From positions 71,362,001-71,426,000 of the forward strand of contig NC_043007.1 of the NCBI RefSeq assembly GCF_006345805.1: a stretch of DNA of 64,000 nucleotides. The letters are read 5' to 3'. The DNA comes from Octopus sinensis (taxonomy: Eukaryota). The notes under the pieces were generated by a model that saw only the letters and a list, made by a program, of their open reading frames with translations, did not search any database and was not told the origin of the DNA. Made by a program: the position numbers and the translations under genes. Shown piece after piece: positions 9,848 to 64,000 of the stretch (its first letter is position 1; every line of letters starts with the position of its first letter).

Positions 9848-10354
9848 GTAAGTATTTCTGATTGTTATAATGACATATCACACTGACATTTTGCTACAGA
9901 CATAACATCAATGATATTCCACTGATACCACTAACATAATACAAACATCAACACTATCACTGATATGATAGCATTGATGACATACTTATATTGCCTTATC
10001 ACTCCTGACACTCTTCATAACTAACCTGTTGTTTACCTTTTACTGCTATCTTTGTATTGCTAATATTCAATGTCAACACCACATATCAAACCTGCACAGG
10101 TTCTAAGAATAGAAAATAAGGAAACCGTTCTTTCATGTGGTTATACCACACATTTCTCCATCAACACCTCAAAGACAGTCACTGTAAATTTCAAGACAAT
10201 GGTATTGTACTCTTCCTCTAAATATCAATGGCATACAACTAAAATCCTTGAGGTCACTACAAACATAAGGCCTCACTATCATGAATGCACTCTCTTGGTC
10301 GGTACACATCCTTAATGCAACAAAGACATTAAGGTAGTGAACTAGCTGAATCAT

Positions 10355-10560
10355 TAGCATACCAGGCAAAATGCTTAGTGGCCTTTCATCTGTTTTAATG
10401 TTCTGAGTTCAAGTTCTTCTGAGGTTGACTTTACCTTACATCCTTTCAGGGTCGATGAAATAAATACCAGTTAAGTACTGGGGTCATTGTAATCGACTCC
10501 CCCCCCCCGCCTGAACTTACTGGCCTTGTGCCAAAACTTGAAACAAATATATCAAAGACT
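10355..10560 (+). mobile_element. SINE family B (Deu/Nin-like central domain)
   Basis: ctgagttcaagttcttctgaggttgactttaccttacatcctttcagggtcgatgaaataaataccag. Same family at 16833, 52060-52660 and 54271. Confidence 0.75.
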
Positions 10561-10749
10561 AACCTTCCTCTTCAGTACCAGAAGTTACTTCAGTTCTCAA
10601 TAATCACTAACACTGTACTAAATTCAAGTGAAACCTATAACAGAATTCTGCTGCTACAAACAAAAAGGGATCTCTCAATTAATTGGTATAATGTCACATA
10701 CCAGCACATTCCATATTCTGGCCCACAGATATACTGTTTCCTTTCCCTC

Positions 10750-10950
10750 TGTATCATTTCTACTTAGATATTCCTGACTCACTACTAGTTTTACTTTCTT
10801 GTCATCCATACTGTGCCCATCTCGTGCCTTACATTGTCAAGTCTTTCATCCCCAGACTGTTGATTCTCTGGAATATCTTCTCAGTTCATGATTTTCCTGT
10901 AACCAACAACTTAGAAGCAATCAACAGGAACATCAAACCACATGATCTCA
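10750..10950 (+). mobile_element. CR1/L2-type LINE 3' remnant
   Basis: Decayed frame HPYCAHLVPYIVKSFIPRLLILWN..FPVTNNL resembles the CR1/L2 C-terminus. Confidence 0.45.
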
Positions 10951-11164
10951 CCAGTCCTTGACCATGGCTGTACTCCCATCTTCCCGATCAAATCAATAGA
11001 TAAAATATCCTATATTAAACAAAATAATTTGCTAAGTATTGTACCTTACATAATATTACAATACAGTGGCATTACCTTCTTGTTGATATGTGGGTTTATT
11101 TCACTGGAATTCTTATATGTTTACAAGGCCTAGACAAGCATCTCCAACTAGCAGGCTATGCTAC

Positions 11165-11206
11165 TCCAGACTGATGACGAGCAAGACTCAGAAACTAGTC
11201 TCTGGG
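11165..11206 (+). ncRNA. Minimal type I hammerhead ribozyme
   Basis: UCCAGA-CUGAUGA-CGAG(CAAGA)CUCA-GAA-ACUAGU-C/UCUGGG: complete core, GUC cleavage triplet and palindromic stem III. Confidence 0.75.
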
Positions 11207-12304
11207 TGCAGGCTTAGCTGGATGGGGGTGCTTGTCTCCCCCTTGTAAACATAAGGACACAGGAAATGTGTCAAGGCCAATAGGCAGCGTTGATGCTTCC
11301 TAGGGCTAAATAGCAGTGGTGTGATTCCCTTCATGAGACTGTCACATTAAGTTGACAGTATACATCGTACCACTACTGCTTATATATCTCTGAGATATTT
11401 AGAAATGTAATATTTCTATTTTTGAAATCATTTTACATTTTATATTTTGGCCTCTACTGACATTCATATACCACTGCTTTATTTATTTATTGTAACATCA
11501 CTGCTGTGTATATCTTGTACAAAGCAGAGATTTAAGAATAACAAAAAAAAAGGGTTTTTGTGCAAGTAGTGTTCATTGAGTAACAAGGGATTAGAGGAAT
11601 CATGAACAAAGAAGTCACAATGAATGAGACAGTTGTCCTTAATTTAAAAACAAATGATAGTCAAGCAGTTGTTTAGGTTGGAAAAATTGGAGTCAGAAAT
11701 TTAGAGGGCTGTGCAACTGGAGGTCTTTGTGGTTGATGTTCATCTAACTGAAAGACGTAGATGATGAAAAGAACGGATTCTTCCTCAATACTTTTGTCCT
11801 ATTTTATCCTTAAAAGTGTTAGTCTCTATTTCTCATGATGTACCAATAGCTCTTTTTTTCATATTCTCTAAAAAGTTCATACCAATGCAGATTATCACTG
11901 ACCATTCTAATATCACTCTACTGGTCCCTATATCATGCATCATCATCATTGTCCTCATCGTCGTCATCGTCGCTGCCACCACTACTGTTGTTGTCATGAT
12001 GATGATGATGATGTATTACACAAATGTTTCAATCTGCTGTGATTGCAGAATTTAAATCAGTGTAATTGACATTAAATATCTGTGACAGAACAACAAAGTT
12101 GTTGCTAAAGCAAGCAAACTGAAGTTTACTTTGTCAACATAATCACATTTTGTTTCACATGTCAAAGAGTATATGACACTCATACTCTCTATGTGGCACA
12201 CTGCTTTATATGGCACACCACTCAATACAACACATCACAACCAGCCATTATTTTCATTTATATTCTTCATTTCTTCTAACTGGAATATTTTTCTTTTCTT
12301 CTAG

Positions 12305-25761: not shown

Positions 25762-26900
25762 TCAGATTGAGTTAGAAGTTTTCTCATATTTCAAGCTTTA
25801 ATTAATAGTTCAATCAAAGTACTTAGGAAAAGCATTTATCCATCAAAATATATTCCATCATATTCTATTGTCTCTTGCCATCTTTGAACCAGAAACTCAA
25901 TTCCATACGTGTACAATTTCATTGGTTTGGAAATAAACCTCATCCACATTGTTGAACCTCCGTCCATCCAGGAAATGAGCTATGGCTCAGAAAAGGTGGT
26001 AATCTGATGGTGCAGAATCTGGACTGTAGACAGGGTAAAGTAGCACTTCCAGCCCCCCAAGTTCCTCAAGTCTGCTCTTGGTTACATTAGCAGCATGTGA
26101 TGAGGTTGTGTCATGCTGTAGGTGTGCATATCTTTGATTGCTCAATGCCAGGTAGAGGGCTTTCAAAGCATCATATACTTGTTGCAGTTGTTGGGCATAA
26201 AGGTTAGTGTTTACAGCATGATAATCTGGGACAAGCCCAAAATGTAACACCTGACTGAGATTCCACCAAAACATACAACAAGGCCTTCTGTTCAAATGAC
26301 CCTTGTTTGACAACTGGTTCTGAAGTGTTATCAGAGTGAAGCCACTGATTTTTCTTATTAAGATTATGAAAATAGATCCAATTTTCATCCCCATTGCATT
26401 TCAACACCAAAAACAGGCATCTTGAGGATTTATTAGCAGTTGTTTGCAAATTTTTACGTATCATTGAGCAGATCATTGGTCAGTTCACAAGAAGTATATT
26501 GATAGTGTCTATTCACAAGGCTGAGCTTATGGAGGTGTCAATTGATGGTGTTTTGTGAAGGAGCAAGTTCTATCAACAATGTATGAGTACTTGTGCTTGA
26601 CTGTCCACCCATTACAGACAAGGCCTCATCTTCCACAACAGAAGGTCGTCCTGACTGTGATTTGTTTTTGAAGCTGTTGTCATCTTTCTTGAAATATCTG
26701 AACCAGTTTTGTACCACATGTTTGTTGACACTTCTTGGGCCTTGCACATCATTAATTTCTTTTGCCACTGCCTATGCATTCAGTCCGTTTTTCACAGGTA
26801 GTGTAAAATGGCTCTCATTGCAATTTTTTTCACCACATATTATCAAAGCTGTAAAATAAAGAATAAACAATTATTGTTCACATTTTATATATGAGAATAA
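25762..26900 (-). mobile_element. Mariner (DD34D) transposon, decayed
   Basis: Fragments VQNWFRYFK...SGRP, GDENWIY, HD...SH and YSPDSAPSDYHLF. Left terminus TA-TCAGATTGAGTTAG; the right terminus is degenerate. Confidence 0.85.
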
Positions 26901-31277: not shown

Positions 31278-33480
31278 CTAGCAGCTAAGCCAGCCGGTCT
31301 GTTTGGATGATGTAGCCGTGATCGTTTTCAGTTAGGCATTATCTATAACAGAGTTTCTCAACCTTATCATTTCGGGTCCCCTGTTTTGGTTGGAGCCTCC
31401 TGCTGTTTTAAAAATTCCCTACCCCCTTGTCAGAAAACAGCTTCAGGAGTTGTGAAAAACGAATTTGTACGTGGTCTGTTTCTGAGAGCTATTCTATTGG
31501 ACTCTGTCTAATCATTAAGACATTGGGCGATCTTTTGATATGGGAACACACGACAAATCACTTACAAACCACCTCTGTCTAATTATTAAAACATTTATTT
31601 AACTATGAACATAGAAAGAAATTATACATTAACCCCTATTTTTGTAAGCAGTTGTATCCGTAAAAATTTATTTGCAGAGAGCAAAAATTTAAAGAAGCTA
31701 TGTGAAATGGACGTGTGTGTGTGTGTGCGTGCGTGCTTGTGTGTGTGTATGTAAGAGAGAGAAAGAGGGTGAGATAGAGCAAGTGAGTGAAGGTGTGTGT
31801 CATTGAGTTACGTTGGCTGGCATGGCGAAGACGAAGCTTTTGAGGCGGCAGACTGGGATGATTTGAAAGATGTGAAGAAATGCCGTCTTTTCAGTGGAGC
31901 GCTTCTTTGTAGGCAACGTTTCTCTTTTTCCCTTCTGATGTACAAAGTATAGACTTTGTGGTCTGCCAACACGAGAGCATCCAACGTAAAGTTGACCGTG
32001 GGAGAACACTTGCTCTGTGAGATTTAAACCAATCATTTGCAATGATTGACTCTGTGCCTTATTTATTGACATTGCAAAGCAGAGTTTGATAGGAAATTGG
32101 AGCCGCTTAAACTTGTAGATCGTATCGGAGGGAGTGACGGACATTGGAGTTATAAGAACATCTTGACCAGCAGCTGGTCCATTCAAGATAGTTGCCTGCA
32201 GAACTCGGGAGTATAATTTTTTGATTATCATCCGCGTGCCGTTACACATTATTGGAGCATCGAAATTCCGCAGCAGCATGATGGGCGCGCCAACTTTAAG
32301 ATGGAGTTCGTGAGGCGGAAGTCCTGCGTGCGTTTAGGAATTAAGGAATTCTGTTGTGAAAACGGTCGTATCATCCGGGTTTTCATGCATGCCAATGGTT
32401 TTGAAGGGAGAGTTTTTCTGCAGGAAGCATATCGAGAAGTTTATTATTGATAGCGTCGACTGTTTTATTGTCAGGCACCAAAATTACTCTTCCTTGTAGG
32501 TAAGTTGTGTCAAGGCTTTGGTATGCAATGTCAGAAAAAACTGAAGAAATCAAATCATCCACGGTAGGCACAAAGTTGCCAGATAGTAAATGGATGGAAC
32601 CATCAGTATCACTAGCTGCAGTTCCATCAGTATCACTAGCTGCAGTTCCAACGTCGAGAATGTAGCCGCGTTTTCGTCGCCATGCACGTGAACTTTCATG
32701 TTCGTAGTCAGGTGAAGTTTCTCGGTGTGGTGCCATTAGTAGGATGATTTTATGGAAGCATTTACCTCGTCAGCTCTTGTCCCCCATGGAATGACTGGTA
32801 GAGTTTGTCAGAAGTCGCCAGCAAGCAGAACAGTCACTCAACCCATCACTCTCATATTGCGTCTTAGGTCTTGAAGAGACCGATCGAGCGCCTCAAAAGC
32901 CGCCTTATGATACATGGTTGCCTCATACCAAATGATAAGGCTGCACTCAGTGAGATTCCCCATGGCTGAGTCACGACTAACATTGCAAGTTGGATTTTCC
33001 TGTTTGGTCAAGTCTAGTGGTAATTTGAAGGCTGAGTGTGCCGTACGACAGCCATGCAGTAGAGTTGCCGCAATGCCGCTTGATGCAACCGCTATGGCAA
33101 TCTGATTTTCCTGGCGAATTGTGGCGAGCAGGAGGTTCATGAGAAAAGTTTTTCCGGTTCCGCCGGGAGCATCCAAGAAAGCAGAAATTGAAAGAAGGTA
33201 TATGAAATGGACATGCGTGTGTATGTGTGTGTGTTTTCCGCTAATTTGGCGGGATTTTTGCAGTCAGCACGAGGTGGTTTGTGTTTATCTCTCGAGTCAA
33301 ATTGTTGTTAATTTGTCTGTAATAGCAATGCCCGGACAAGTGAAAATATCTTCGCAAAAAACAGCTTCAGGAGTTCTGATGAAAGAATTTTTACGTAGTC
33401 TGTTTCTGAGAACTATTCTATTGGACCTCTGTCTAATAACGTCTTTTAAGGTATACACACATACATAGAAAATGTAAGGT
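31278..33480 (-). mobile_element. Helitron with fragmented PIF1-like helicase
   Basis: DAPGGTGKTF...VASSGIAATLL..GRTAHS-like, IIW(D)EA, LCNGTR-like and RLQFPIKLCFAMSINKAQ...HGQLYVGCSRV motifs. 3' CTAG-T at 31281-31277. Confidence 0.92.
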
Positions 33481-35479: not shown

Positions 35480-38400
35480 CGGATGTGTGTTTCGCAACGA
35501 AGCAAGAAGCAAGACGCCGTTCCACAGTGCCACTAAAAGTGAAGATATACTTGTGCCGACGTACTTTGGTCGGCGTGTAACAAAAATAACAATTGGGGAA
35601 ATGAATATATGCTGGCTGGTGACGATAGTCCTCCTAGACATAGAGGACACCGCCACAATACTGGAGGTACACAAGTTGCACTAACAAAATTGGCCGGGTC
35701 AGGGGGTGGAGCTCTTAATCCAAGTGGAACAAGAGAGCATAGAGCTTATCCCCGACTCGTTCAGTCCGGCGAGGTGACACAAGACTATACATGACCGTAG
35801 AGGGCAGGAGGCCGAGGTGTTACCTCTGTGGTGATAAGAACCACCTCAAGGTCTCTTCCCCAGAAAGATAGGGGAGGAACGGCCAGCACTACTACCAACA
35901 CAAGTGTCAGTGTCACCTCCAGCGCAACAACAGCAACAGTAGGTGCAGCAGCAGCAGAGACCAGCGGTCGATGCACCAAGGGCAGCTCTGGCACCATCAC
36001 CACCACCAGCAGCAGCAATAGCGATACTGCCTCCAGCCGTCACTGAGTTTTCAATACCAAAAACCAGGGGAACCACCAGCAACAAATGACCCCCCTACAC
36101 ACACACACAAGTTGAGGACCCACAAAACAACACCACTTTCACCAGCACTACCACCTCAAACACATACAAAAACACAAATTACTCCACACAGACTCCACAA
36201 GCACTACCAGCCTCACTGCCTTAAACACAGACAATATATATTGTTACACACTTAAAGAACAACACAGACACCACAATGGAAGATTTTGTCTTCCCAACAC
36301 AATGCACCACTACAACACATACAAATTCTAAAAACTACACAGCACACATGCAACATTAAAAACAAATTTTCCTGAGGCTGTTAGGTCGTTTCCAAAAACT
36401 TTTTCGAAAAGACTCTACAAAATCCTTCTCGTGGAAACACCCACACCAAGGAACAAGGGGGTCGGTCACTTCACCGAACAACAGCAGTAAGTAGCGCTCA
36501 CCTCCATTAATATTTTTCAGCATGGTCGTGCTCAAAATTGGTTGCATATATGCCTGGGAAACAAGGTCACCTTTTAAACGACCTGAGGTCTCTTAGTGTA
36601 GACGTAGCAGCCATTAGTGAAACCAGACTTTCTGCCCGCTTGCCTTCATGTCCCTCTTAGCTGGATACGAGATCTACCTATCTCCGTGTCTCAGTGCCTT
36701 CAGACTAGTGGTTGCCTATGCTCCGACAGGAGCAGGGCGACCGGATTACTTCAAGTGTCTGGAGGTTTTCCTGGGAACGTCTCGAACTTTAGTGTTAGTA
36801 GGGGATTGGAACACTGTCTTAGGTGGACGTTTGGATTGCGTGTATTTATCTGATAAGAGAAGCGGGTGCACAAGCCTCAAAAACCTGCTCAGACGTTTTC
36901 AGCTGTCTGATAGCTACCGACTAGGCTACCTGAATGTGCCAATGTGGACCTAGACAAATCGCATCGGGTCATCTAGATCGTATTTAGATAGAGTTTTCTG
37001 TAGGCCAAAGGATAAGGATAGTATAGGTTGTCCACATTTTCACATGATCGGTTACGCAGATCACAAATTCGTGATCTGTACGGTCAGCCTAGATAGGCTT
37101 CGTAGACAGGACCCCAGTTACTGGAAGCTGAACACGTCGTTAGCGGCGTGCCAAGCTTACAGAGACCGGATTAGCGTTGACGGATCAATCATCAACAACA
37201 ACTGGTGGTTTTCTCTTAAAAGAGCAATTATAGTAGAATCCATTAAGATTAGTGAAGCTTTAGCGGTAGAAATAGAATAGAGGGAGATTTAGTTAGAAAG
37301 TTAGATGAGTCACTTAGGAAAGGCATCGCAACCGACATGTTGGCAGCGAGGTTGGCCCTCAACCAATTTTTCGACATCAAACACGAAGGCTGTGTTGTTA
37401 GAGTTAAGCGGGGACGGAATGAAAGCCGCTCGACGGGCCCGAGTGGCGGAGGCAAAACGTGGCAACAAAGTCACCATTCGATCTTTGGTGGACTAGAACG
37501 GGTGCGAGATGTCTGAACCGAAGCAGATCTGTGCGGCCTTTCAGCTGCATTTTGCTCGACTGTTCGGGGCGAGTGGTGGGACAGCCTGGACAGCCTGCCG
37601 CGACTCTCGAAGAGCGAGGCGGAGTGCTGCGAAAATCCGATAACAGCTGCGAAAATATAGGAAGCGATGAAGGTCCGCGTAAAAAGCAGATCGCCGGGTT
37701 TGGATGGTCTGCCCTACGAACTTTATATTTCTATGTCAGACTTGTTTGCGGGCTTCTTAGCAGACGTCTACTGCAACTGGCAACAGAATAGGAGAATTTC
37801 CATTTTTGTTTGTCGAGTGGCATGATAGGGGGGCATGATAGAGAAGTTCAGGTCCATCACTCCGCTTGATGCAGAGTTGAAGATTTTGGCCAAGGTGTTA
37901 GCCAAGAGGTTGGCACTTGTCGTGGACAAGCTGATTGGCGATTCGACAAAATGCGCCATTCTAACTAGGACTATTCAAGACGACCTTCCACCTCATACGC
38001 CACATCATAGAGAGGATGAATAACAAAACTGGTATGGGAGGGGCTCTGATCAATTTAGATCAATCTAAAGCCTTCGATAGGATCGACCATCAATACTTGG
38101 CAGCTGTTCTCGCGGCAGCCGGTTTCAGTCCAGTTTTCCGCAGTTGGATCGCTGCTTTGTACAGCGGTATCTGCTCAGTAGTTCGAGTGAGTGGTCACCT
38201 GTCAGAACCACTGAGCATCTTGCACTCGGCCCGTCAAAGGTGCCCTCTCTCCTCCTTTCTGTATGTACTGACTCTTGAGTCACTTCTGCGGAAGCTGGAG
38301 ACATTGAGGGCGTCCCGCATGATCTAGAAAGTGGGAGAAGCGTGTCTGCTTATGCCGATAATGTCACTATCGAGTCACAGGCACATAAACCTGATTAGCG

Positions 38401-38880
38401 ACACACTAAAAGAATATAAAGCGGTGACAAGAGCAAAAATTAACGCAGAAAAATCAGTGGACTTGAAACTCGGCACCTGGAGAGGCAAGTCCATGCCGTC
38501 CAACAACGTTGTAGAGCGCTGGACAGACGGTCTAGTTATATTGCTCGGAATTTGGTTTGGTCCAGAAATCTAGGTTGAGAAAAACTGGGATGATGTAACA
38601 AACAGGGTGGCGAATCTCACCCAGAAATGGGCCGATAGGAAGCTGTCCCTGAAAGGTCGAGCCAAGCTGACGAATGCGTACATCGAATCCGTCATATATT
38701 ACCGCTTGACCGTCGTCCCTTGTCCTTTATGTCCGCTTTTTGTGGAGGGATTGATTTCCGCTGGTAACGTTCTCCATCTGCCGTCAACAGCCGCTGAACT
38801 GGGGCCTAGACATGCTGTGGTTGTTGATACGCAGACATGCGCTCAGGCAGCGATATCTCCAGTGTTTCCCTGACGGTGAG
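35480..38880 (+). mobile_element. L1/Tx1-clade LINE, decayed (ORF1, APE endonuclease, RT)
   Basis: VAYAP, VLVGDWN, SRSYLDRV, DHK and YWKLNTSL (endonuclease). PGLDGLP, KILAKVLAKRL, LDQSKAFDRIDH, RQRCPLS, SAYADNV and KINAEKS (RT). Many stops and frameshifts. Confidence 0.92.
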
Positions 38881-38994
38881 TAGGTGTGATCACCCTTTGT
38901 TAGACTCGCTCTACCACAGCTCGTTTCTTTGACTGAACAGCAATCCTAGATTAAGCGTAAATCAAGGAAGGGTACTTGACACCTCGAGTGCCAT

Positions 38995-39800
38995 CAAGCG
39001 ATCATAGCTCCCTGCAACTTTTCATCTGTGCACTCTCCATTTATTTCTTTATAGAATCTCTTCTGATCTACTCTGAATAACCTATTCTGCTGGTAACCCT
39101 TTATTCTTTGGTCATATCTTACCATAAATGTTTGATTCCATCATCTTCAAATACCCCTAGGTATTTGTAGCGCTCTGCTGGTTCTAACACCTTCATGACA
39201 TTCTGCTGGTCAAGATTAACGTTGGATGTTTCTGTCATTTTTCCTTTGATAAAGGTAGCTTTTGCACATTTATTGAGGCCAAATTGCATCCAGATGTCAT
39301 CAATGAATTGTTTAACAATTGTTAGTAAGCCCTGTAGTTGTTGGTAATTTTTTGCAAAGAGCTTTAAGTCATCCATATAAAAGTGATGATTTATATTTTT
39401 ATCAAACATTTTATAGCCATATTGAGCAATTTCGAGAGAGGTATTAAGGCTAGAAAAAAGAGGAGTGGTGATAGAGAGTCACTCTGGAAAATGACACATG
39501 AAATTCATACATCTCCAGCATTGATAGATTCATTGTCACTGTTCAAAGTCAGTGTGGTTCTCTATGATCTCATACTCCCAGACAAGAAGTTTCGCAGAGA
39601 AGGTGCTATTTAATACATTTCCAAACGTTTCTTAATCCAGCTATGTGGTAGACTATCAAAAGCTTTTTTATAGTCTACCCTGTTTTTGTGTCGTTTGAGA
39701 CAATCTTCCAAGATCATCTTATTGATGAGTAGCTGATCTTGCTGCGTGTATACTCTGCGATGACATCCCTCACGCCGGACTTCTTTCTCATGATCTCGCT
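38995..39800 (-). mobile_element. R4/Dong-like (RLE-type) non-LTR RT fragment
   Basis: LDYKKAFDSLPHSW, IFQSDSLSPLLF, HHFYMDDLKLFAK, FGLNKCA and YKYLGV. Confidence 0.8.
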
Positions 39801-42735: not shown

Positions 42736-42741
42736 TTTAAT
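42736..42741 (-). terminator. Candidate poly(A) signal (ATTAAA) of the M4 gene
   Basis: ATTAAA on the - strand about 180 nt after the stop, just before microsatellite/TE sequence resumes. Confidence 0.3.
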
Positions 42742-42920: not shown

Positions 42921-44827
42921 TTACATTTTTTTATCACAAATCAACTCGTGAAATAAATCATCTAGAAATGTCTCTCCATCAAAATCTGGATCACAGCGAT
43001 AATTAACACGTATACTAACATCCTGTAAATTTTCAGTAGATTCTGAAGATAATTTGACAAAGAAATTATGTCCTTCAGGCCTTCCCAAATTCAGTTCTGA
43101 TGTGCCTTCAGCTAATAATGTAACTGAATCTGAACCATCTCCCTCTGCTAGCATATTATTCGTTGATACCTTAATACGAACTTTGCCACACATACTAGTG
43201 GCAGTAATTGTAATATTCCCAGCCCAGCTTGGATAAACAAAATAAAAGACTGGGTTTGTTTTAACTGACACTGTAATACCTGAGACTGTTTTGTTAAATG
43301 GCAATCCTCGAATATATTTCTCTACATCACATGGTTTAATTCCCACAAGTTCATAGGCTTTAATAAAGGGGGTTAGATCTTTCCCAAGATCATAGGCAAC
43401 TTTCAACGTATCACAAGCTCCGGAAGTGAAATTTGAGAGAGGATGCCAATATATTTCATTGGCAATAAGGAAAACTCGATAAGCTTCCTTGATATCCATT
43501 TTTAATTCGTGTACAATGTAGTAAAAAATAAAATTATAAATCCCACTTCCATGATGAGGATCCGTGTTTTCAGTGAAGTTATCTACATGACTTATAGATA
43601 TATTGTCCAAGGATGGGTCTGCCATAAATCTCAATGCTTCCTCATTTTTCATGAGGTTGAAGCCAATAAACCAGTCATTCCCACTTGCATAAGCTTCAGT
43701 GACCTCTCCAGTCATATCAGAAAAAGCCTCATTCATAGATCCAGACTGATCAAAGTAAAGCAATCTAGAGTGTTGTTGTGTGAAGCCATGGGCAAGTTCA
43801 TGCCCGATAATATCAGCAACTGTAAAAGGATAAAAGTTTTTATAGCCATCACCAAATGTGCAATATTTCCCATCCCAATATGCGTTAGCAAAATATACTC
43901 CAAAGTGAACACGCAATATAGCTTGTTCGTTTAGTATTGAAGTATTATACCATTCCTGAAACATTTGAGATACTACACTGCCGTAATAGAAAGCATCAAG
44001 TGCTGGAGATATCGCTGCATTGACACTATCATTAAAACCAACGTCACAAAGATAATACATAGGATCTGTATTATTAGAGACTTCATTAAAACTGTTTTTC
44101 ATGTCTATGACCTTCACATAATTATTTTCCAGGAAGCACATTTCACCAATTTGAGTTACAAAAGCTTTGTGATTTTTCTCACTAAATTTGTATATTCCTG
44201 ATTTTTCATTACCGCCGGAACCAGTCAATACTCTGGAAATTGTATCTAAATTGTTATATTTCAACAGTATTTCTCCAGTGTTACCATCAATGACAAATGT
44301 AGGCCGTTTAATAACTATTTCATTTTCTATTCTATAATTAATATAGTATGTTAATCGAGGTTTGTCATTTTCATCCATGAAAATCATAATTTCATATTCT
44401 GGTTCGATACTATTTGCGTAAATCTCATCTCCCTCTGCTTTAAAAGCAATATCAAAGACATCTGATTTGGAAAGCTTTGGTTTTACATTTGTAATATCAT
44501 CTTCAATTCCTTGAATAAATGTTCCTGTTGCATCACCAGTCAAATGTCCATCTTTATCTTCTGTAACAGTTAATGAAGCATCAAAAACAGGAACACCTAA
44601 GAACTTCTCTTGTAAGCGTAAAACTTCTGTGCCTTCAACTGTTTTGATACGGTTTGACTCTTCAACTTCTTCATACTCCTTCAAACCAAGAAGATCTCTG
44701 ACTGTTACTTCAGCTTTATCTAAATGACGCCGCTGAAACGGAGCTGAGGGATGATAAATCATCCTCCTTGCTCTTTCATGGGCATCAACACGATAAGCTG
44801 CATCAGATGTCTTTATCAGTAACAAAC
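42921..44827 (-). CDS. Secreted M4-family (thermolysin/pseudolysin/vibriolysin-like) zinc metalloprotease, exon 2
   Basis: Uninterrupted 634-codon frame with a poly-T-AG acceptor at 44829-44828. Motifs: FTP/PepSY propeptide, mature N-terminus TGSGGNEKSGIYKF, NAYWDG, GHELAHG (HEXXH at 43802-43788), Y..SGSMNEAFSD, LRFMADP, DPHHGSGIYN, two LasB-like Cys pairs and a PPC-like C-terminal domain. Confidence 0.96.
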
Positions 44828-46026
44828 CTAAAAAAAAAAGAAAACATTACAATTATTAATAACAGAACCATCAGAATTTTTTTTAAAAAAAGACTAATTT
44901 TTTAACAATACATACAAACATAGTGACGGAACAACAAAGAATTAAATTATTTAACAATTCAAATTAATAGAAATATGAGCTTATAATATAATATATATTG
45001 CCCAATAAAAAAAAATTACATCAGTCTAACCTATTTTAGTGCGAATAAATTCATCCAAAGAGATATTCAGTTTGTTCATGCAGTTAATTTAATATTTGAT
45101 GAAATAGGGAGGTGATTTGTTACAAGGAGTGATTAGTTTTAAGCGAATGGAAGCGAGTGTTCTTTTAGTAAAACAACGATCAGTATCTGGAAACTACAAG
45201 TTAACTAAGGTCTGCACATCGGTTATGTATTATTTCAACAGAACATAAAAGTGAACAATTCCAAACACATTACAAATGTTTTCTATAAAGATTCTATTGT
45301 AACTCATTTACATGTGTACACCACGGCATAAATAATAAATGGCACTTGATGCATAAAGTGAGTTAAGTTTTATATTCTGTTCCCAAGAAATTCACTTCCC
45401 GAGCCATTGATCTCAACAAAGGTATGTAAGATTTATGTCAGTAAATCCATTATTCCTAGCAATGACATCTTTCTCTTAGATTTCTAAAGTCATTCTTCCC
45501 TGTATCCACAGGTAAGTTAAATTACTGTGACACCTTTTTCTGCGACGAATTTGTATGTTCAGCTATCAGCCCAGGCTCCACTAATCGTCAGAGTATCGAA
45601 AATCAGACGACAGAGTGATAAACAATTGTATTGTGAACGTCATTACTGTACAACTGTTTCTGCAGTAAGATGATGTAGACTCATAGTTGAGTTCCTGCGA
45701 AACAAACACCTCATTGCTTCATCAGAGCCTGAAATATGAAGTGAAATTTATTTGGGAAGAAACATCTACATTTATGCATATACATCCAAAAGCATTAGCA
45801 GTGAGAAGATAAACACATGTGTGAAAGGAATGACATTCAAGGCCCCACTCCCTTGAAATAACATTAATGTTAAGGCTTTATAAGGAAAGGTACACATAGA
45901 TGCAAAGAAACTGTAATTAGATCTATCAGTGAAAATATGTGTATACATTATCACATGAAAAGTATACCCACACACCCAGATCTATATACATATACATACA
46001 AATATATGGATACAAATATTCATACA

Positions 46027-47221
46027 TTGGGTTGGTAAAAAAGTTCGTTGCGTTCTTCAATAGGTGATATGTTTTATCACGTGACAGAAAATGACTAGTA
46101 TATTTTCTAGAAAAGTGGATCTCAACGCATTTTGCTGTTTTAAATTTGTGCGGATTATTTACTTCTACTGTTCTTACGATAAAATTGAAAAAGAAAGAGC
46201 ATGAAATTCATATTCCTCATTTAACGCTCTTTCGTTTCCGGGGAGGCAAAAACGCTGGATAAACAGCAAAGAAGATATGCGCTGTTTACGGGGATGGTGT
46301 TATATCTGAAACTACTCTCTGTAAGTCGTTCGCTAGGTTTATAACCAAAAATTTTGACCTGGAAATCGTGAACTTTCTGGCAGGCCTACAGTCGTTGATA
46401 ATGAACAAATTGAGACTTTTATGAAAATACAATAACCTATGTTACACAGTACGAGACATCGCAGAGATTATCCACGTATCTCATGCGAGCGTTATAAAAT
46501 ATTTAAAAACACTTGGTTATATGAATTGCTACGATGTTTGGGTGCCTCAAAGCTTAACAGAAAAATATTTAATCGAGCGCATTTCCATCTACGGTTCTCT
46601 AATCTGAGGAAACAAAATTGATACATTTTGGAAAAGAGTAGTCACGTGTGATGAGAAATGGATTATTTACAACAACATAAAACGAAAGAGGTCCTGGTGA
46701 AAACGAGATGAACCACCTTCAATTTCTCCAAAACTGGTCTGTATCCGAAGAAGGTGATGCTCTGTATCTGGTGGGATTGGAAGGGTACTGTGTATTATAA
46801 GCTACTTCCACAAAATCAGACGTTAAATTCAGACTATTATTGTTCCCAATTAGACTGTTTAAAGGTGGCAATTGATGAAAAACGTTCAGAATTGGCCAAC
46901 CAAAAGGGACAACGCTAGACCACACGTTTCTTTGGAGACCAGGCAGAAATTGGTGCAGTTTGGGTTGGATGTCCTGCCCTACACATCGTACTTACCTGAC
47001 CTTGCACCTTCGGATTATCATTTATAATAGCCACTTAGACCAGTCATTGACCCAGGAAAATGCTAAGCTCTGGGAGGATGGGATCATGATGCTGCTTCAA
47101 AGATGACGAAAAGTAGTGGAACAAATTGGCAAGTATGTGGTTGAGTAAAGGTGTGTACAACAATCTAAGTATTGTTAATGAATTTTACATAAAAACTGGT
47201 ACAAACTTTTTCCCGACCCAG
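46027..47221 (+). mobile_element. Mariner (DD34D) transposon, decayed, inside the M4 gene intron
   Basis: TIRs TTGGGTTGGTAAAAAAGTT / CTGGGTCGGGAAAAAGTT. Motifs VTCDEKWI, KKVMLCIWWDWKG, DNARPH and PDLAPSDYHL. Confidence 0.9.
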
Positions 47222-47316
47222 TACATATACGTATATATCTATCTCTTTCTCCTCTCTCCGCCCCCCTCTCTCTCTCTGTATATATATATATATATATATA
47301 TATACATACATAAACA

Positions 47317-47363
<47 letters not shown>

Positions 47364-47384
47364 CACACTTTGAGTCGAACCAGG

Positions 47385-47537
47385 GACAGCTGATGAAGGG
47401 GAATTTTCCTTTTATTGTTTGTCCTGTACTCTGTTTTTTCGTTGTTTAAAAAAAGTCCGTTTCTTTGTTTGATTTTATATTCTCGTCTCTCGTTGTGTTC
47501 TACGTTTATTTGTGGGGTCCTGTACTTATATATATAT

Positions 47538-47574
<37 letters not shown>

Positions 47575-47650
47575 GCATGTATATATACATGTAGATGTAA
47601 GTATGTACATATATGTATGTATATATGCATATATTTTATTTATTTATTAT
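47385..47650 (+). repeat. Penelope pLTR-like remnant; homologous to 54900-55190
   Basis: Shared gacagctgatgaagggga.tttt.cctt...gtcctgtac and a downstream gcatgtatatatacat block. Confidence 0.6.
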
Positions 47651-50015
47651 ATTACTATATGACCGAACGCACGCGTTACTTCTCTTCTCCAAGTGGAATT
47701 TCAGAAATGGCAAAATCCAAGTGAGGCGTATACCGCGGGCTACTCTTCAGGCCAAGTATATCTTGATTAGATTCAAGGCTATATTGTTGCAAGGAGGTAC
47801 CATTTGACACAAAGAAGATTCAATCACAATGTGTAGAGAGTACAGTATGAGAGAGGTATATAAATGTAGGGAGAAGGGAAGAATGAAGAAAAAATAGGAG
47901 AGAGAGTGAAATGAAGAAGGAATTCGGTGCGGTAAGTTGACTGGTAGTAGATAGTTTAGAGCTATTTGATGTCTACTTCTAGCGTGTTGATGTTTATCAG
48001 AACCATTTACTATAATTGTATCTGTATAATTATATATCAGTATTAATTGTCCCTATATGGTTTTTATTATACACTGGCCACTTGATAAAATCTTTACAAT
48101 GATTCTTTCCTTAATCATGTATAAATATATATGTTTTACTCCGATCAATTTATATTCACTGGGGTATTATTTTGAGCGTAAACGCATGTGGTTGAGGTGA
48201 TTGAATTAAATTTGACTTGTATATACGTGCAGATTTATGTATATGTATGTATGAATATGTATTATTCGTTTGAGTATGTAAAGATATTTGCATTTATATT
48301 TTTTCGGGTATATTATACTGAAGACGGCATACGGATTTTATATCTCTTAGCTATGTGTGTGTATATGTTTGCGTGTATGTGTTTGTCACCCAACATCCAA
48401 GGCTCCTTCATTGGAACTTCAACATCAACAGGGTATTTTTGTATGTATGTATGTATGTATGTATGTATGTATGTTTGTATGTACGCGTACGTGCAGATTT
48501 GTATTTTTTGCTTTATGTATGCCTTCTCATGCATATACTTACATATCTAGATATGGTCATTTTTCAATCATAAACTAAAAACTTTTACAGATTTTTACAG
48601 TTCCAGTGATGTATGTATGTATGTATGTATGTATGTATGTATGTATGTATGCATATATGTATATAAGTATGTATGCATGTATGTATATTATTATAAAAAT
48701 ATACCTCCAATTCTGCATCTCTCCAGTTCACAGAATATTTAGAAATTATGAAATTTTGAAACCATTTAAGTAAATAAAAATTTTTTTTTTCCAAGAATTT
48801 CAAGCGCATTTTCAATTTATCTTTTCTTTATATTTCTTTGCACATGAAAAAAAAACCACTTAGTTCTATGTTCACATTTACCATCCAAAGAAGAAAAACG
48901 TCAGCAAAGTCTGACTCATGTGGGAAGACAAAAACACAGATATCCTATAAGAACCAAAAGAGATCTCTAAAATTTCGATCTTAACTAAAACAAATTGATA
49001 ATATATGGAACCATACCAAAAAAAATCAACAAGTGAATATGCAGATTTCACCGAGCTTTTCACCGAGCTAATCAAACTTTAAAGCAGTTGTACAAAATTA
49101 TAGAGACAGTAATACAACGCAGTCTAGAACAAAACTCAGAACACAAGCAAGAAAGCAACAATATTTATCAGCAACAAGTGTATTCAGTCAAATACAGCTG
49201 AAATCATATTTGATTCCAAATATTCAAAATTAGCAAGGTGTCGTTTGGAACATGTTTAAAATAATGGCAAAGCTAAAATATATGAAAAGTGGATTTATTC
49301 AACGCCAATTTTGTAAAATATGATCGTGTCACAAACAAGTTTTGTGGTCTGTTTTTTGTAAGGTACTTCAATGAAGGAAAAAAGAGGGTGCTACAAATTC
49401 AAATGATGTTCATTGGCAGCAAACTTCATGCTTGACTTGCCATTATTGAACTTCTAAGTTGTAGAGTGATATCTCTGTATCGTACTAAAGCCTGCAAGGA
49501 ATTTCAGCCCCTAACACATCTTCAGACCAGAAAAAACAAGTCACAGATCTCTATTCTTCCTTGGTGCACAATTTCAGTGGAGCAGCCATGTTTACTCTGT
49601 AACACAAGAAAGAAAACTGGAGCAATCAAAGTAAGCTTGGATACATAAACACAAGAGGGCCAACTTTTGGCGCACGTCTGGAAGGCAGTGCGACCAAAAT
49701 AAAGCGAACGAGCGTGTGTTTGAGTGTATGTGCCTCAGCAGACTCCTGACTGCAATGCTAGAGATGAGTAATACATATTTTGCTGTGATCAATATCATAT
49801 ATTTACAACCTGGGTTCATATCTCGACGGTGATAGCAACTTTACCCTTCATTGTTTCCACTGTCTATCATATAAGTATTGAAATAATATCCATAAGTAAA
49901 ACCTAAGTTCTATAAAATGTTTCATGTAGAAAACAAGTAATTTGTCATAATCAGAAAATATAAAGATAAAATACATGTAAATTCAATAATAAAAAATTCT
50001 TGAAAATATACTTAC

Positions 50016-50064
50016 TGCCAAATAGGAGATGCCAGGAATAAAATATAACCATCAAATGCCTCAT
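50016..50064 (-). CDS. M4 metalloprotease exon 1 (start codon and signal peptide)
   Basis: ATG at 50064 encodes MRHLMVIFYSWHLLFG+A, followed by a perfect GTAAGT donor (50015-50010). The phase-1 donor matches the phase-1 acceptor at 44828, giving MRHLMVIFYSWHLLFGSLLLIKTSDA|AYR..., a typical signal peptide. Total 651 aa. Confidence 0.82.
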
Positions 50065-50141
50065 GATTGTGTAATATTCACAAATCCTCTGCTCTTTTCA
50101 AAAACCAGCTCAAGATGTATCTCAATCATTGCTGACTCTTA

Positions 50142-50149
50142 TTTATATA
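50142..50149 (-). promoter_or_regulatory. TATA box of the M4 protease gene
   Basis: TATATAAA on the - strand, 78 nt upstream of the ATG. The only intervening ATG (50129) is out of frame and lies upstream of the expected start site (~50120). Confidence 0.6.
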
Positions 50150-50759: not shown

Positions 50760-51960
50760 TAAAACTTTAAAATTCTAATTTTAATATGTTTTCATAGAAA
50801 TGGGATTCTATCGGAAGATGTGATAGATCTACAGGCATTTACTGGCAACACATCTAAAGACCTAAGCTGTGTTCCTCCAAAAAGTGCTTTCCGCTTTGAC
50901 CGACCAGGATCCAAACCCAGATTGATTAAGCTGTTGTTTTCGAACTCTACTGAGGCGCGGGCATACCATCTAGCCGCTGATAGGGCTCGGCGCGAAAACA
51001 GAATTACCTTTCGGACACGTCCTGGCCTACCAACTGATGTACGTTCGTTCAAAGCTAAGATCTGTAGCTTCCCTAAATCGCAACTCTGTGCCACAGGAAA
51101 GCTTTAGCCTACGCGACGATGGGAATATGGAAATTCGTCAAGTCTGGTGAGTCATGGATAAGGGATATCAGTTGGTCTGAACATACTGCACCCACAATAA
51201 CTGGCAATACAAAAATCATGGAAAACTAAACAAGAACAATCAGCCATCCCCTGTATATCATCGTCATCTGAAATCCAGATACAAACTGTTGTCTTTAAAT
51301 GCCCGTAGTTTATGCAACAAAGTACATCTTTTTTACTCTTACGTCAAAAGTATCGACTACGATTTCATCACAGTCACGGAAACATGGGCACACTCTGCAC
51401 TCTGTGATGGGGTTTTCAGCATAGCCGGCTACAACCTGTTCCGCAAAGACCGCATTAATCGACGTGGTGGGAGTGTGATGGTTTACGTTCGTTCAAATCT
51501 ATCGGTAATTCCTTGTGATGATTTGAACCAATCTCAACAGGAAGTATTTTTCTGCAATATACACATGACTATGTCAACACTTCTACTCGGAGTTGTTTAC
51601 CGCCTCCCAAATTATCATCAAGACACACAACATTTTGATATCCTCAGAGTTGCTGCCATGAAAACAGCCACTTATGTTTATATTGCGGGGAACTTCAATT
51701 TTCCTTAGATTGACTGAGAGGCCTTCCGTTGGCCGCAAAGTGCAGACGATTTCCTTGAACTGGTGCGGAATTGAAATTGGTCTCAAGTCGTTACCTCCCC
51801 TACAAGGGGTAACATCACTTTAGATCTGCTATTTACCGCTTCTCCTGAAACAATTATTAGTGTCACTACTGAAGAACCTTTAGGTGACTCTGATCATTCC
51901 ATGATCATGGCCGACTTGTCTCTGGTTATAACAAAAACCACAACCGTCTTCAAACTGCCC
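50760..51960 (+). mobile_element. CR1/L2-type LINE 5' part (ORF1 tail plus APE endonuclease), decayed
   Basis: KPRLIKL (ORF1); LNARSL, ITVTETW, FRKDR..RGGSV, VYRLPN, GNFNFP, PTRGNITLDLLF and LGDSDH (endonuclease). Confidence 0.88.
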
Positions 51961-52059
51961 GATTTGACTGGAATAAAGCAGACTGGAACTCTTATTTACG
52001 GAGCTGTGACGCGCAAACTGGCTCGAATTTTATGCCTCTGGAGATGTGAACAATATACT

Positions 52060-52660
52060 TCAGAACATTCTGCTATTTCGTTCTGAGTTCAAATTCCACC
52101 GAGGTCCACTTTGCCTTTCATACTTTAGGCTCGATTAAATAAGTACCGGTTACGCACTGGAGTTGATGTAATCGACTCAATCCCTTTGTCTGTCCTTGTT
52201 TGTCCCCTCTATGTTTATTCCCCTTTGGGCAAAAAAGAAATTAATATTTTAACATTGTAAAAGCGGCGAGCTGGCAGAGACGTTAGCACGCCGGGCGAAA
52301 TGCTTAGTGGTATTTCGTCTGCCGTTACGTTGTGAGTTCAAATTCCGCCGAGGTCGACTTTGCCTTTCGACAATTTCGGAGTCGATAAATTAAGTACCAG
52401 TTACGCACTGGGGTTGATGTAATCGACTTAATCCGTCTGTCTGTCCTTGTTTGTCCCTTCTGTGTTTAGCCCCTTGTGGGTAGTAAAGAAAGGTATTTTC
52501 TCTGCCGTTACGTTCTGAGTTTAAAATCCCGCCGAGGTCAGCTTTCCCTTTCATCCTTTCAGTGTCGATAAATCAAGTACCAGTTGCGTACTGGGATCGA
52601 TATAATCGATTGGCCACTTCCCCAAAATTTCGGGCCTCGTGTCAAGAGCAGAAAAGAATA
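52060..52660 (+). mobile_element. Cluster of three family-B SINE copies
   Basis: Three successive ctgagttcaaattcc.ccgaggtc.actttgcctttc cores at ~52082, ~52333 and ~52515; full head at 52262. Confidence 0.85.
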
Positions 52661-55183: not shown

Positions 55184-55802
<619 letters not shown>

Positions 55803-55859
55803 AATATATTCAAGTGAAAACATTTACAGATTTTTTCTCTTATGGGATTTTTCACGCTA

Positions 55860-57045
55860 ACTACTTGATAATTTCTTATGAAGATTTAATCCTTGTACGT
55901 ATTAGACATTCATTTACGTGCACTTCGTCTGGTCTCATATATTGCATAAAATGCACCCTCTGCGGGATGCTGTATGTAGGACAGACGGGACGCCGGTTGG
56001 TCGACCAATTCGCCGAACATCTAAGGGGTGTTCGGCTGCGTTCCAATTCTCCCGTCGCACGCCACTTCTGCTCGGCCAGCCATTCCCCGATGACATCTCT
56101 GTGTTTGGTCTCGCCCCACACAACGGTCCTCCACAATCCAGGCTTCACTTGGAGCAACGGTTCATATTCACTTTACAGACTAATACCCCGCACGGACTCA
56201 ACACAGCCCCTCCTCTTAGTGACTGCGCTCCACCTACCGCAACAAGCAACTTTTTTTTATTTCTTATTTCTTCCTTCCCTTTTTTTTCATTCCTTTCCCT
56301 ACGTGCTATAACGTCTTTTATATTATTTATTGTTTTTTTATTATTTTATTGTTTTTATAAATTATTGTCCTTATACAGAAACACATACACACACATACTC
56401 ACGTATCCACGAACACACACATACTTCCAACACACCACGCACATACAACATACATGCACATATACGCACACATACTTCAACACATATATACACACGCACA
56501 CACACAAAAATACACACACCTACACACCCACAAACCCTCACGCGCACATGCACATAAGCCCGTGCACACACACACGTGCACAAACGCACACAAACGCACA
56601 AGAATGCACAGAAACCTAACCTATCCCATCCAGCATACACAGACACACAAACCTTTAGACACATACCTTTAGACACACACACATAAACGTACACATAGCC
56701 ACATACGCTCACATACTCAAGCACACGCGCGTACACACATTAAAATGAACACAACCCAACACACATCTCCACGGTCACACACACGTACGTACATACGCAC
56801 ACAATACACGCACACACACATACAAACGTACATACACACAGACCAGCACAGATGCCCACATATACTTCCAACAAACAATACTCATACAGATACGCACACA
56901 CTTATACATACATGGGCACATACACACACACACATACACGCACTTAAGCGCACACACGCACACAAGCACACGCATGTACATTACGCCCACACAACTAAAA
57001 AAATCCCCCCACACACACACGCATACATTCACACACACACATACA

Positions 57046-57080
<35 letters not shown>

Positions 57081-58488
57081 GGGGTTGGCTGTATTGCAGG
57101 CGTGCGTCAGTGTATCTGTGTGTGCCTGTGGATTCACATACACCCACACCAATTTTTTTCCCATCAATCTTTCAAATATAACGTGTGTGCGTGCATACAT
57201 ATATATACACACATATAAACCTCTACATTTGTACACACACGCACATGTATACATACATTCACTCGCACGCACGTACACAGACATACACACGCACATACAC
57301 ACACACCAGCACAGATGCCCACATATACCGCCAACAAACAATACTCATACAGATACGCACACACTTATACACACATGGGCACAGACACACACACACATAC
57401 ACGCACGTAAGCGCACTCAAGCACACGCACGCACATTACGCCCACACAACTCCACCCCACCCCCACACGCATACACAAATTCACATACACACCGATACAT
57501 ATACATACACACAATATATGCCTACACGCGCACACACACATACACATACGTATACACATATAGGCACAGACACACACACACATACGCACACATAAACATG
57601 CGCACACATACGCACGCACACACGCACACCAATGCACACACCCAACACTCACAACACCACGGATACACGCATATACATCAATATAAACTTACACACACAC
57701 ACATACAAACGCACACGTACACGCACACACAACTACACGCACGCACATACATGCACACACACACACACAAATGAACCCACACATACATCCCATACATACG
57801 GCACACAATTATACATACATATATACACACATACGCAGGTACAAGCACACACGCACACATACACTAAGTAAAGCACAGTTATTCGCCACACACCCAAACT
57901 CTACGCATACACACACGATACATATACATACACGCACACACACACATACTTCAAAGTAACAGTACTGACCTGTGGCAGGGACAAAAACACCACTCCTTAT
58001 TCTACTAGCCTTACAAACTAGCCAGCCTTACTACTAGCCCTTTGTTTACAGCCACAACCACACACACATAGACACACACACGCACGCACACACACACACA
58101 TGCACGCACACACACACACACGTGTCATCATTGCACACATGCACACACATACGCACACACAGACCTCCGTGCACGCACATATCCACACTTACACACACAT
58201 TCCCCCCTCTACCATTCTGATGTCTTTGACAATACTACTCTTCTGTCTTTGAAAACATCTTTCTTCACCCTTTTCCTTCCGGTCGTTCAAAATGTGACCT
58301 CGTGTGTACCGTTGGCGATTTTTTTCTTCTCTGGATCTTTCCTTCTCCTATGTTTGCGACGAAGAGCTCCGTTCGAAACGTTAAACCCTCCTTCTTTCCT
58401 ACTTTCCTGAGCGTCCAATAATACCATTTTTGTTCCACGTCCTCGCGTTGTTGTGTTTTTTTTTGTGCTTTCTTGTTTGGATTAACTA

Positions 58489-61603: not shown

Positions 61604-63509
<1,906 letters not shown>

Positions 63510-63679: not shown

Positions 63680-64000
63680 ATACATGTGTGTGTGTGAGTG
63701 TGTGTGTGTGCTATGGGTAACCGCGCGCCATTAGCCACACGTGTGTTTGTATATGTATTTACGTGCGAATACGTGTTTACATGTTCTGTGTGTTCATGCA
63801 TGTGTGTGTGTGTGTGTGTGTTTGTGTTAGTATGTGTGTGTGTGTGTGTGTGTGTGTGTCTGTCTGTCTGTTTATATCTACGTGTATTTCTGTTGGCGTG
63901 TAGGTGTATGTTCTATGAAGTAGGTGGGTAGACCGGTTGTACTAGCGCCTTGTATATCCGCAGAGAGAACATCACCATTTTATCCTTACTAAATTGGACG

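Follow-up and report, generated by a model that had tools for sequence, protein, structure and literature searches.

The 64,000-nucleotide stretch of Octopus sinensis DNA analysed here (contig NC_043007.1, positions 71,362,001 to 71,426,000; hereafter the window) carries on its minus strand a two-exon gene whose predicted product is a complete preproenzyme of the M4 family of zinc endopeptidases, of the vibriolysin/pseudolysin type. Peptidases of this family are classic secreted proteases and virulence factors of bacteria, and an initial reading of the same sequence (the original prediction) had proposed that a bacterial enzyme of this family was domesticated as a spliced, secreted animal gene. 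As that reading had it, the window's list of open reading frames (ORFs) contains an intact frame of 634 residues at 42921..44825 (-), directly behind a pyrimidine-rich splice acceptor (T10-AG, with the AG at 44829-44828), and a separate 49-nt exon at 50016..50064 (-) starts with an ATG and encodes Met and the first 16 1/3 codons of a signal peptide (MRHLMVIFYSWHLLFG plus one nucleotide), followed directly by a GTAAGT donor at 50015-50010. Joining 50064-50016 to 44827-42921 gives 1956 nt, i.e., 651 codons and a stop codon, in frame across a phase-1 GT-AG intron of 5188 nt (44828..50015 (-), 33% GC); exon 2 (42921..44827 (-), 1907 nt) supplies the remaining coding sequence (CDS; residues 17-651) and the stop codon at 42923-42921. 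A search of 5.8 billion protein sequences (candidates pre-filtered by shared words, best 120 matches per search listed) found this 651-residue product to be 100% identical over 100% of its length to the RefSeq entry 'neutral protease-like [Octopus sinensis]', and the NCBI gene span on chromosome CM016869.1 (assembly GCA_006345805.1) corresponds exactly to window positions 42921-50064, with the same coding span for exon 1. The two-exon gene model is already present in RefSeq, and all coordinates and residues of the original prediction were reproduced.

The gene is host-like in composition and surroundings. Its CDS has 35.2% GC, 26% GC at third codon positions (GC3) and a CpG observed/expected ratio of 0.51, against 36.6% GC and a CpG ratio of 0.55 for the window, in agreement with the AT-rich codon usage noted before. 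It lies on a 77.5-Mb chromosome (CM016869.1), and the decayed transposable elements said to surround the frame are indeed there: the intron, rich in microsatellites with long (ACAT)n, (TG)n and (TA)n runs, holds a mariner element that extends over ~46.1-47.15 kb and whose decayed transposase at 46206..46897 (+) matches Pfam HTH_48 (E 3e-12) and Transposase_1 (E 5e-22) in two different frames, with frameshifts and stops, and the remaining window is eukaryotic transposon debris. Judged from its sequence, and as part of the overall explanation set out below, we consider it highly probable that this is a functional nuclear gene of the host.

A candidate TATA box, TATATAAA, lies where it had been placed, at 50142..50149 (-), 78 nt upstream of the ATG; a stretch of 11 G precedes it by about 20 nt. 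Across the window there are 27 copies of the motif where chance would give 9 (a threefold over-representation), so that on its own it is weak promoter evidence, and while it is retained in the tandem paralogue described below, the entire upstream region there is 93% identical and its conservation is therefore uninformative. For these two reasons the TATA box was rejected as evidence for a promoter, and we treat TATATAAA as a candidate element. Past the stop codon, the first candidate polyadenylation signal is an ATTAAA at 42736..42741 (-), about 180 nt downstream, followed by candidate AATAAA and ATTAAA motifs at 42313-42301 (-).

Protein layout, residues and predicted fold

The protein begins with a plausible eukaryotic signal peptide, composed of MRH, a hydrophobic core and the residues S-D-A. 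According to the hydropathy profile the end of this peptide (...SLLLIKTSDA) is encoded at 44799..44827 (-), and the rule of small residues at -3 and -1 predicts cleavage after Ala26, between S-D-A and a further A. There follow a propeptide (~residues 27-214; 44235..44798 (-)) that opens with the clade-specific motif AYRVD and contains FTP and PepSY regions; the mature M4 catalytic domain (~residues 215-516; 43329..44234 (-)), with HELAH at 43802-43788, coordinates checked by translation; and a C-terminal part (42924..43328 (-)) in which profile-profile and structure searches point to a PPC-like beta-sandwich (~residues 525-630) and a Cys-containing terminal helix (residues 637-647). The protein has eight N-x-S/T sequons.

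Pfam matches to Peptidase_M4 (PF01447; residues 230-367, 79.2 bits, gathering cut-off 22.4 bits) and Peptidase_M4_C (PF02868; residues 370-513, 88.6 bits, cut-off 24.4) follow one another in the N-to-C order of MEROPS M4, and the FTP match is also above its cut-off (residues 75-113, 22.8 bits against 21). These three of the domains that the original prediction had named were thus found as expected, whereas PepSY in the propeptide scored under its cut-off (16.8 bits against 24), and PPC (PF04151) had no match at E <= 0.01 in the last 135 residues and was recovered only by more sensitive means. An hhalign comparison of a profile of 16 mollusc C-termini with a bacterial PPC profile gave a probability of 75% (E 2.5e-5) over 98 of 105 columns, and a separate AlphaFold2 model of the C-terminus, with a predicted local distance difference test (pLDDT) value of 88, consists of a beta-sandwich and a terminal helix. 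The best Protein Data Bank match to this model was the collagenase PPC domain 5sv5 (E 4.6e-5, template modelling (TM) score 0.70), followed by the collagen-binding domains of ColG and ColH. Based on these models, the C-terminal domain is predicted to be a strongly diverged PPC-like beta-sandwich placed directly after M4_C. Taking the Pfam domains, the PPC profile comparison and the structure match together, the full bacterial architecture (propeptide, M4, PPC) therefore appears to be present, with the PPC part strongly diverged.

The assignment to the LasB/vibriolysin subgroup rather than to thermolysin, made originally from sequence features, was borne out by both sequence and model comparisons. 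Among proteins of solved structure, the best sequence match was to Pseudomonas pro-elastase (E 3e-81, 277 bits), extending from residue 57 in the propeptide to residue 525 and aligning the octopus propeptide region with that of LasB; the next matches were Legionella ProA and vibriolysin MCP-02, and thermolysin scored far lower (96 bits). An AlphaFold2 model of the octopus protein (mean pLDDT 86) gave the same ranking, with the modelled mature domain superposing best on vibriolysin MCP-02 (TM 0.95, root-mean-square deviation (rmsd) 1.5 A) and LasB (TM 0.93-0.95, rmsd 1.7-2.0 A), then on ProA (TM 0.88, rmsd 1.6 A) and least well on thermolysin (TM 0.81, rmsd 3.1 A); the modelled propeptide matched the MCP-02 propeptide chain more loosely (TM 0.68, rmsd 5.7 A). 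The predicted fold is the two-lobed thermolysin fold.

The residues on which catalysis depends in this family are all in place. The seven residues listed originally by ORF number (H342, E343, H346, Y357, E366, R399 and H424) become H359, E360, H363, Y374, E383, R416 and H441 when 17 is added for the full-length protein, and each is invariant in an alignment of 52 mollusc, eukaryote-like and bacterial M4 sequences. By equivalence with characterized M4 enzymes, H359, H363 and E383 are the zinc ligands and E360, Y374 and H441 the catalytic residues, and Y374, R416 and H441 align with their LasB counterparts; the glu-zincin signature is present as H359-E-L-A-H363, with the third ligand E383 in NEAFSD, 20 residues on. 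The two cysteine pairs and the glycine-rich mature N-terminus likewise proved as described: Cys247/277 and Cys488/516 align with both cysteine pairs of LasB (Cys247 and Cys516 invariant, Cys277 and Cys488 nearly so), and GSGGNEKSG (residues 219-227), which fits GxGGNxKxG, corresponds to the conserved start of the mature enzyme. At sites conserved in at least 85% of the sequences the octopus protein has three departures, all three common to its tandem paralogue, and no private damaging substitution was found at conserved sites of the alignment. Judged by sequence and by modelled fold, the protein agrees with MEROPS M4 and with the vibriolysin/pseudolysin subgroup on every point compared.

Besides the LasB-type pairs there are four further cysteines, Cys339, Cys563, Cys628 and Cys647 (window ~43860, 43190, 42995 and 42936). 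Cys628 and Cys647, which most molluscs retain, may link the terminal helix to the PPC-like sandwich; Cys339 lies in the catalytic domain and is likewise conserved in most molluscs, but bacteria lack it.

Among known enzymes the closest in layout are vibriolysin MCP-02 of Pseudoalteromonas and the Vibrio vibriolysins, which combine an FTP/PepSY propeptide, a two-lobed M4 domain and a C-terminal PPC-type domain and share with the octopus protein the zinc and catalytic residues as well as the mature-domain superposition and the looser propeptide match given above. The octopus protein differs from vibriolysin in being only ~34% identical, in having a eukaryotic signal peptide encoded across an intron, a PPC domain that Pfam misses, an extra terminal helix with cysteines, the eight N-glycosylation sequons and the extra Cys339. 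LasB of Pseudomonas aeruginosa and ProA of Legionella share with it both cysteine pairs, the HExxH...NEAFSD arrangement and the active-site Tyr and His; however, they lack a C-terminal PPC domain and are exported by bacterial type II secretion, whereas the octopus protein is the product of a spliced animal gene. Thermolysin and the bacillolysins (Firmicute M4) belong to the same family, with the same fold and catalytic mechanism, and the equivalences to thermolysin H142, E143, H146, Y157, E166, R203 and H231 hold, but they are more distant by score and fold and lack the two cysteine pairs.

Based on what is known of the M4 family, the gene would encode the zymogen of a secreted vibriolysin/pseudolysin-type zinc endopeptidase. 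The eukaryotic signal peptide, split by the phase-1 intron, would send the protein into the secretory pathway; the FTP/PepSY propeptide would act as both folding chaperone and inhibitor and would be removed autocatalytically near residues 213-217, just before GSGGNEKSG. The mature domain would bind zinc through H359, H363 and E383, with E360 as the general base and Y374 and H441 stabilising the transition state, and would be expected to prefer a hydrophobic residue at P1'. The PPC-like C-terminal domain may bind substrate or may be trimmed, as in bacterial vibriolysins. A protease of this kind would respond to M4 inhibitors such as phosphoramidon.

Tandem paralogues, homologues and a shared intron

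While the 64-kb window holds no second M4 copy, a tandem paralogue annotated as 'elastase' (656 residues, 91% identical) begins ~1.5 kb past position 64000 on the same strand, at window-equivalent 65521-72215 (locus L002, 10001-16695). It shares with the window copy the 49-nt first exon, GTAAGT donor, pyrimidine-AG acceptor and intron position, and a third copy, 73% identical, lies on the same chromosome. The differences between the tandem copies are concentrated in the C-terminal third. Overall the ratio of non-synonymous to synonymous substitution rates (dN/dS) is 0.86 at a synonymous divergence (dS) of 0.05; by region it is 0.45 for signal peptide and propeptide, 0.50 for the catalytic domain and 2.1 for the C-terminal third (37 non-synonymous against 5 synonymous changes), values that rest on small counts between copies too similar for firm conclusions and that hint at rapid change in the C-terminal tail. 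Long-term constraint is better indicated by the intact frames found across the phylum and by the invariant catalytic residues.

Related M4 genes were suspected to be annotated already in molluscs, and the protein searches showed this to be correct. O. bimaculoides, O. vulgaris and Argonauta hians have annotated orthologues (66-82% identity); homologues at 37-41% identity were found in the bivalves Mya arenaria and Mercenaria mercenaria and the gastropods Haliotis rufescens and Pomacea canaliculata, and the chiton Liolophura sinensis was reached via one 90% cluster. Chitons, gastropods, bivalves and cephalopods are represented, and both main branches of Mollusca are covered; no named animal outside the molluscs appeared among the best 120 matches listed per search. 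One public model from O. bimaculoides (P0003, 723 residues) contains the propeptide segment 'DLLGLKEYEEVEESNRIKT...TGDATG' twice and has no signal peptide, and looks like either a wrongly joined gene model or a genuine duplication within the gene.

Further homologues came from proteins of ENA, JGI and Logan assemblies and are eukaryote-like in context. The loci that we fetched (from ERZ26052378, ERZ25767047, ERZ25069853 and GCA_022702835.1) lie on contigs of 0.6-2.2 Mb, other members being on contigs of up to 7.6 Mb, and have ~38% GC and hardly any further gene calls; one of them holds M4 copies in tandem. In four ENA loci and one GCA_022702835.1 contig, a long ORF without a start of its own is preceded by a phase-1 pyrimidine-AG acceptor, as in the octopus. 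The same phase-1 intron interrupts the signal peptide in Haliotis and in Pomacea, the latter with two extra introns in the propeptide. In all eight loci compared (Octopus, Haliotis, Pomacea and five eukaryote-like), 10-14 codons separate the intron from the downstream V-D of a motif A-x-R-[VI]-[DN]. This motif stands directly after the signal peptide; it recurs in those clade sequences whose N-terminus is complete, but not in the one bacterial N-terminus that was read (Vibrio, P0024). Some members of the clade (P0054, P0140 and P0145) keep a canonical PPC domain. Three sequencing runs yielded short contigs of a 50%-identical homologue, probably decapodiform, in which signal peptide and remaining CDS are contiguous; this is indirect evidence for splicing.

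ERZ26052378 shows amplification of the M4 homologue: locus L006 contains two copies ~9 kb apart (10001-12265 and 21080 onward), and the 90% clusters of P0026 and P0050 (loci L006 and L007) hold 16 and 21 proteins on a few large contigs. Also found on these contigs is a repeat that encodes 'YQIRKIAGCACxGNAGNVFP' and is present in more than 100 copies across ENA contigs.

Origin of the gene and alternative readings

We placed the octopus protein among its relatives with neighbour-joining trees (Kimura distances, bootstrap, 456-473 well-aligned columns) of 117 and 234 sequences. Molluscs were monophyletic in both sets (100% and 97% bootstrap, respectively), and the grouping of molluscs with the eukaryote-like sequences had 88.5% support in the small set; in the large set it had 70% with 51 sequences and 52% with 54, and no named bacterium fell inside this clade. 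Because the trees lack a thermolysin-type outgroup, the proposed nesting of the clade within bacteria rests on the asymmetry of scores (277 bits to pro-elastase vs 96 to thermolysin) and of fold (TM) described above.

Bacterial relatives number in the thousands in the protein searches. A scan of one genome per species over 185,579 prokaryotic species gave at least 575 relatives, of which the best 80 are all 29-36% identical and come from Lysobacterales, Xanthomonadales, Burkholderiales (Roseateles, Undibacterium), Vibrio, Shewanella, Pseudoalteromonas and others; none of the 185,579 genomes holds a relative above 36% identity, and a close bacterial donor was rejected on this ground. The donor proposed originally, a marine gammaproteobacterium, is plausible but was not demonstrated, as the best relatives include soil and freshwater Lysobacterales and Roseateles and the next node beyond the clade has 8% support; the available comparisons point to some member of Pseudomonadota and do not narrow it further. 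A viral vector was considered and dropped: 2.9 million viral contigs yielded just three partial M4 matches, all of them weak (29-34%).

A bacterial origin followed by intron gain, as first suggested, is the best reading of the gene. The timing required revision: a transfer stands, while an event at the level of octopuses or of molluscs does not, since the same signal-peptide intron occurs in eukaryote-like contigs outside the molluscs and places the transfer further back and more broadly. We therefore favour, as the best explanation and with high confidence in the reading as a whole, a single ancient transfer of a complete preproenzyme gene from a bacterium to a eukaryote, followed by capture of a signal-peptide exon, in a gene older than the last common ancestor of living molluscs and shared across them. 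In this sequence of events, a bacterial gene with propeptide, M4 and PPC regions would have entered a eukaryotic genome once and picked up from the host a 5' exon that encodes Met and the first part of the signal peptide; it would then have descended vertically since at least that molluscan ancestor, become fully recoded to host composition and duplicated in tandem in octopods.

Several alternatives were weighed against this reading. Two or more independent bacterial transfers, or spread between eukaryotes, with a signal-peptide intron arising convergently, would fit the low support for internal nodes joining the subgroups (16-42%), the 52-70% for the whole clade in the large set and the fact that bacterial proteins outscored mollusc ones in the top 120 matches of the eukaryote-like group's profile search. 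However, an intron of the same phase and at nearly the same position in eight of eight eukaryotic loci, a motif common to the clade and absent from the Vibrio N-terminus read, and the lack of any named bacterium within the clade in the neighbour-joining trees make this unlikely. An ancient eukaryotic M4 gene inherited vertically and lost from nearly all other eukaryotes would explain why the gene is old, carries an intron and is fully host-like in composition; we regard it as very improbable, given that the octopus protein falls into one subfamily of an overwhelmingly bacterial family, that the bacterial propeptide and PPC architecture was kept, that the named proteins among the matches listed are from molluscs alone, and that the sole intron common across lineages lies outside the bacterial-like gene body. 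That the ORF is bacterial contamination or a misassembly is effectively refuted. While the protein type is classically bacterial, GC3 is low and CpG depleted; the spliceosomal intron carries a mariner element and microsatellites, the gene lies on a 77.5-Mb chromosome next to a tandem paralogue of the same structure, orthologues occur in the independently assembled genomes of O. bimaculoides, O. vulgaris and Argonauta, and the scan of prokaryotic species found no bacterial relative above 36% identity.

The window copy could also be a decaying or catalytically silent duplicate, a pseudo-protease or a binding protein, as the presence of at least three linked copies and the dN/dS against its neighbour (0.86 overall, 2.1 in the C-terminal third) might suggest; the intact 651-codon frame with canonical splice sites, the retention of all catalytic, zinc-binding and disulfide residues, the lack of private substitutions at conserved sites and the dN/dS of ~0.45-0.5 in propeptide and catalytic domain render this quite improbable. 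Some observations do weigh against the single ancient transfer of a gene that is still functional. The trees are by neighbour joining only and without a thermolysin-type outgroup, support for the whole eukaryote-like clade is moderate in the large set, and the node that should identify its bacterial sister has 8% support. The distribution is patchy, with no oyster, mussel, Aplysia, Lottia or Biomphalaria protein among the matches listed, which suggests losses. For the octopus copy itself, constraint on the C-terminal part is uncertain, the dN/dS of 2.1 coming from small counts, and splicing, secretion, processing and activity are deduced from sequence.

Regarding function, the most likely role, and this is a guess, is extracellular protein digestion, in the saliva or the digestive gland, because the protein is predicted to be secreted and the gene is tandem-expanded; because homologues occur in grazing and filter-feeding molluscs, we favour a general digestive or defensive role over a venom-specific one. 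A fuller scenario, which we offer tentatively, is that of a single transfer before the radiation of molluscs, uptake of a host exon, persistence for more than half a billion years in molluscs and in at least three non-mollusc eukaryote lineages (with large tandem arrays in the latter), and expansion in octopods into a fast-evolving tandem family of salivary, venom or digestive proteases. To our knowledge, the M4 class does not feature in the customary lists of salivary and digestive enzymes of cephalopods.

The domestication of bacterial genes by animals is in itself a recognised phenomenon. The bacterial toxin families of centipede venom are an example (PMC7864903), and the pattern is alike in that a signal sequence and intron were gained, host composition was reached and tandem duplication was lineage-specific; the protein family is different, however, and the octopus transfer would be much older, before crown Mollusca. 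Within the literature covered, our full-text searches found no M4 case of a bacterial gene domesticated by an animal, and no publication dealing with M4 peptidases of molluscs or cephalopods or with how these were transferred, which is not proof of novelty. The gene is already auto-annotated in several molluscs, and it is an old, well-preserved example from a protease family not usually tied to animals. With catalytic residues intact since a time before chitons, snails, clams and cephalopods diverged, it would offer a clean, datable case of a bacterial secreted enzyme turning into an animal one, in which the bacterial leader was replaced by a host exon via a phase-1 intron and the composition was recoded, and in which the PPC domain decays while the catalytic core stays frozen. 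As the general type of transfer is known and the gene auto-annotated, we rate the significance as moderate.

Other features of the window

Rfam searches found no RNA family match in the window. Within a higher-GC block at 26-40 kb, Pif1/Helitron-type helicase fragments lie at 31803-33263 (-), with a P-loop 'GGTGKTF' and a C-terminal segment that has a weak Pfam Pif1_2B match. Stop-free pieces resembling non-LTR (non-long-terminal-repeat) retrotransposon endonuclease and reverse transcriptase (e.g. 'YMDDLKLF') were recognised by eye at 36621-39478 and 51181-52083. At 55781-56308 (+) there is a segment, 'IYCIKCTLCGMLYVGQTGRRLVDQFAEH', that had no Pfam match and that we take to resemble the GIY-YIG nuclease motif of Penelope-like elements. 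About 1.3 kb of imperfect CA/CACG-rich low-complexity sequence follows at 56500-57800, with two similar sub-blocks of a few hundred bases each inside it, and the bin at 56-58 kb shows extreme strand asymmetry (GC skew -0.52, AT skew +0.30). Also by eye, we noted an N-terminal fragment of a piggyBac-like transposase ('...EIITAETNRYA') at 62897-63196 (-) and a second mariner fragment ('...YSPDSAPSDYHLF') at 25990-26400 (-).

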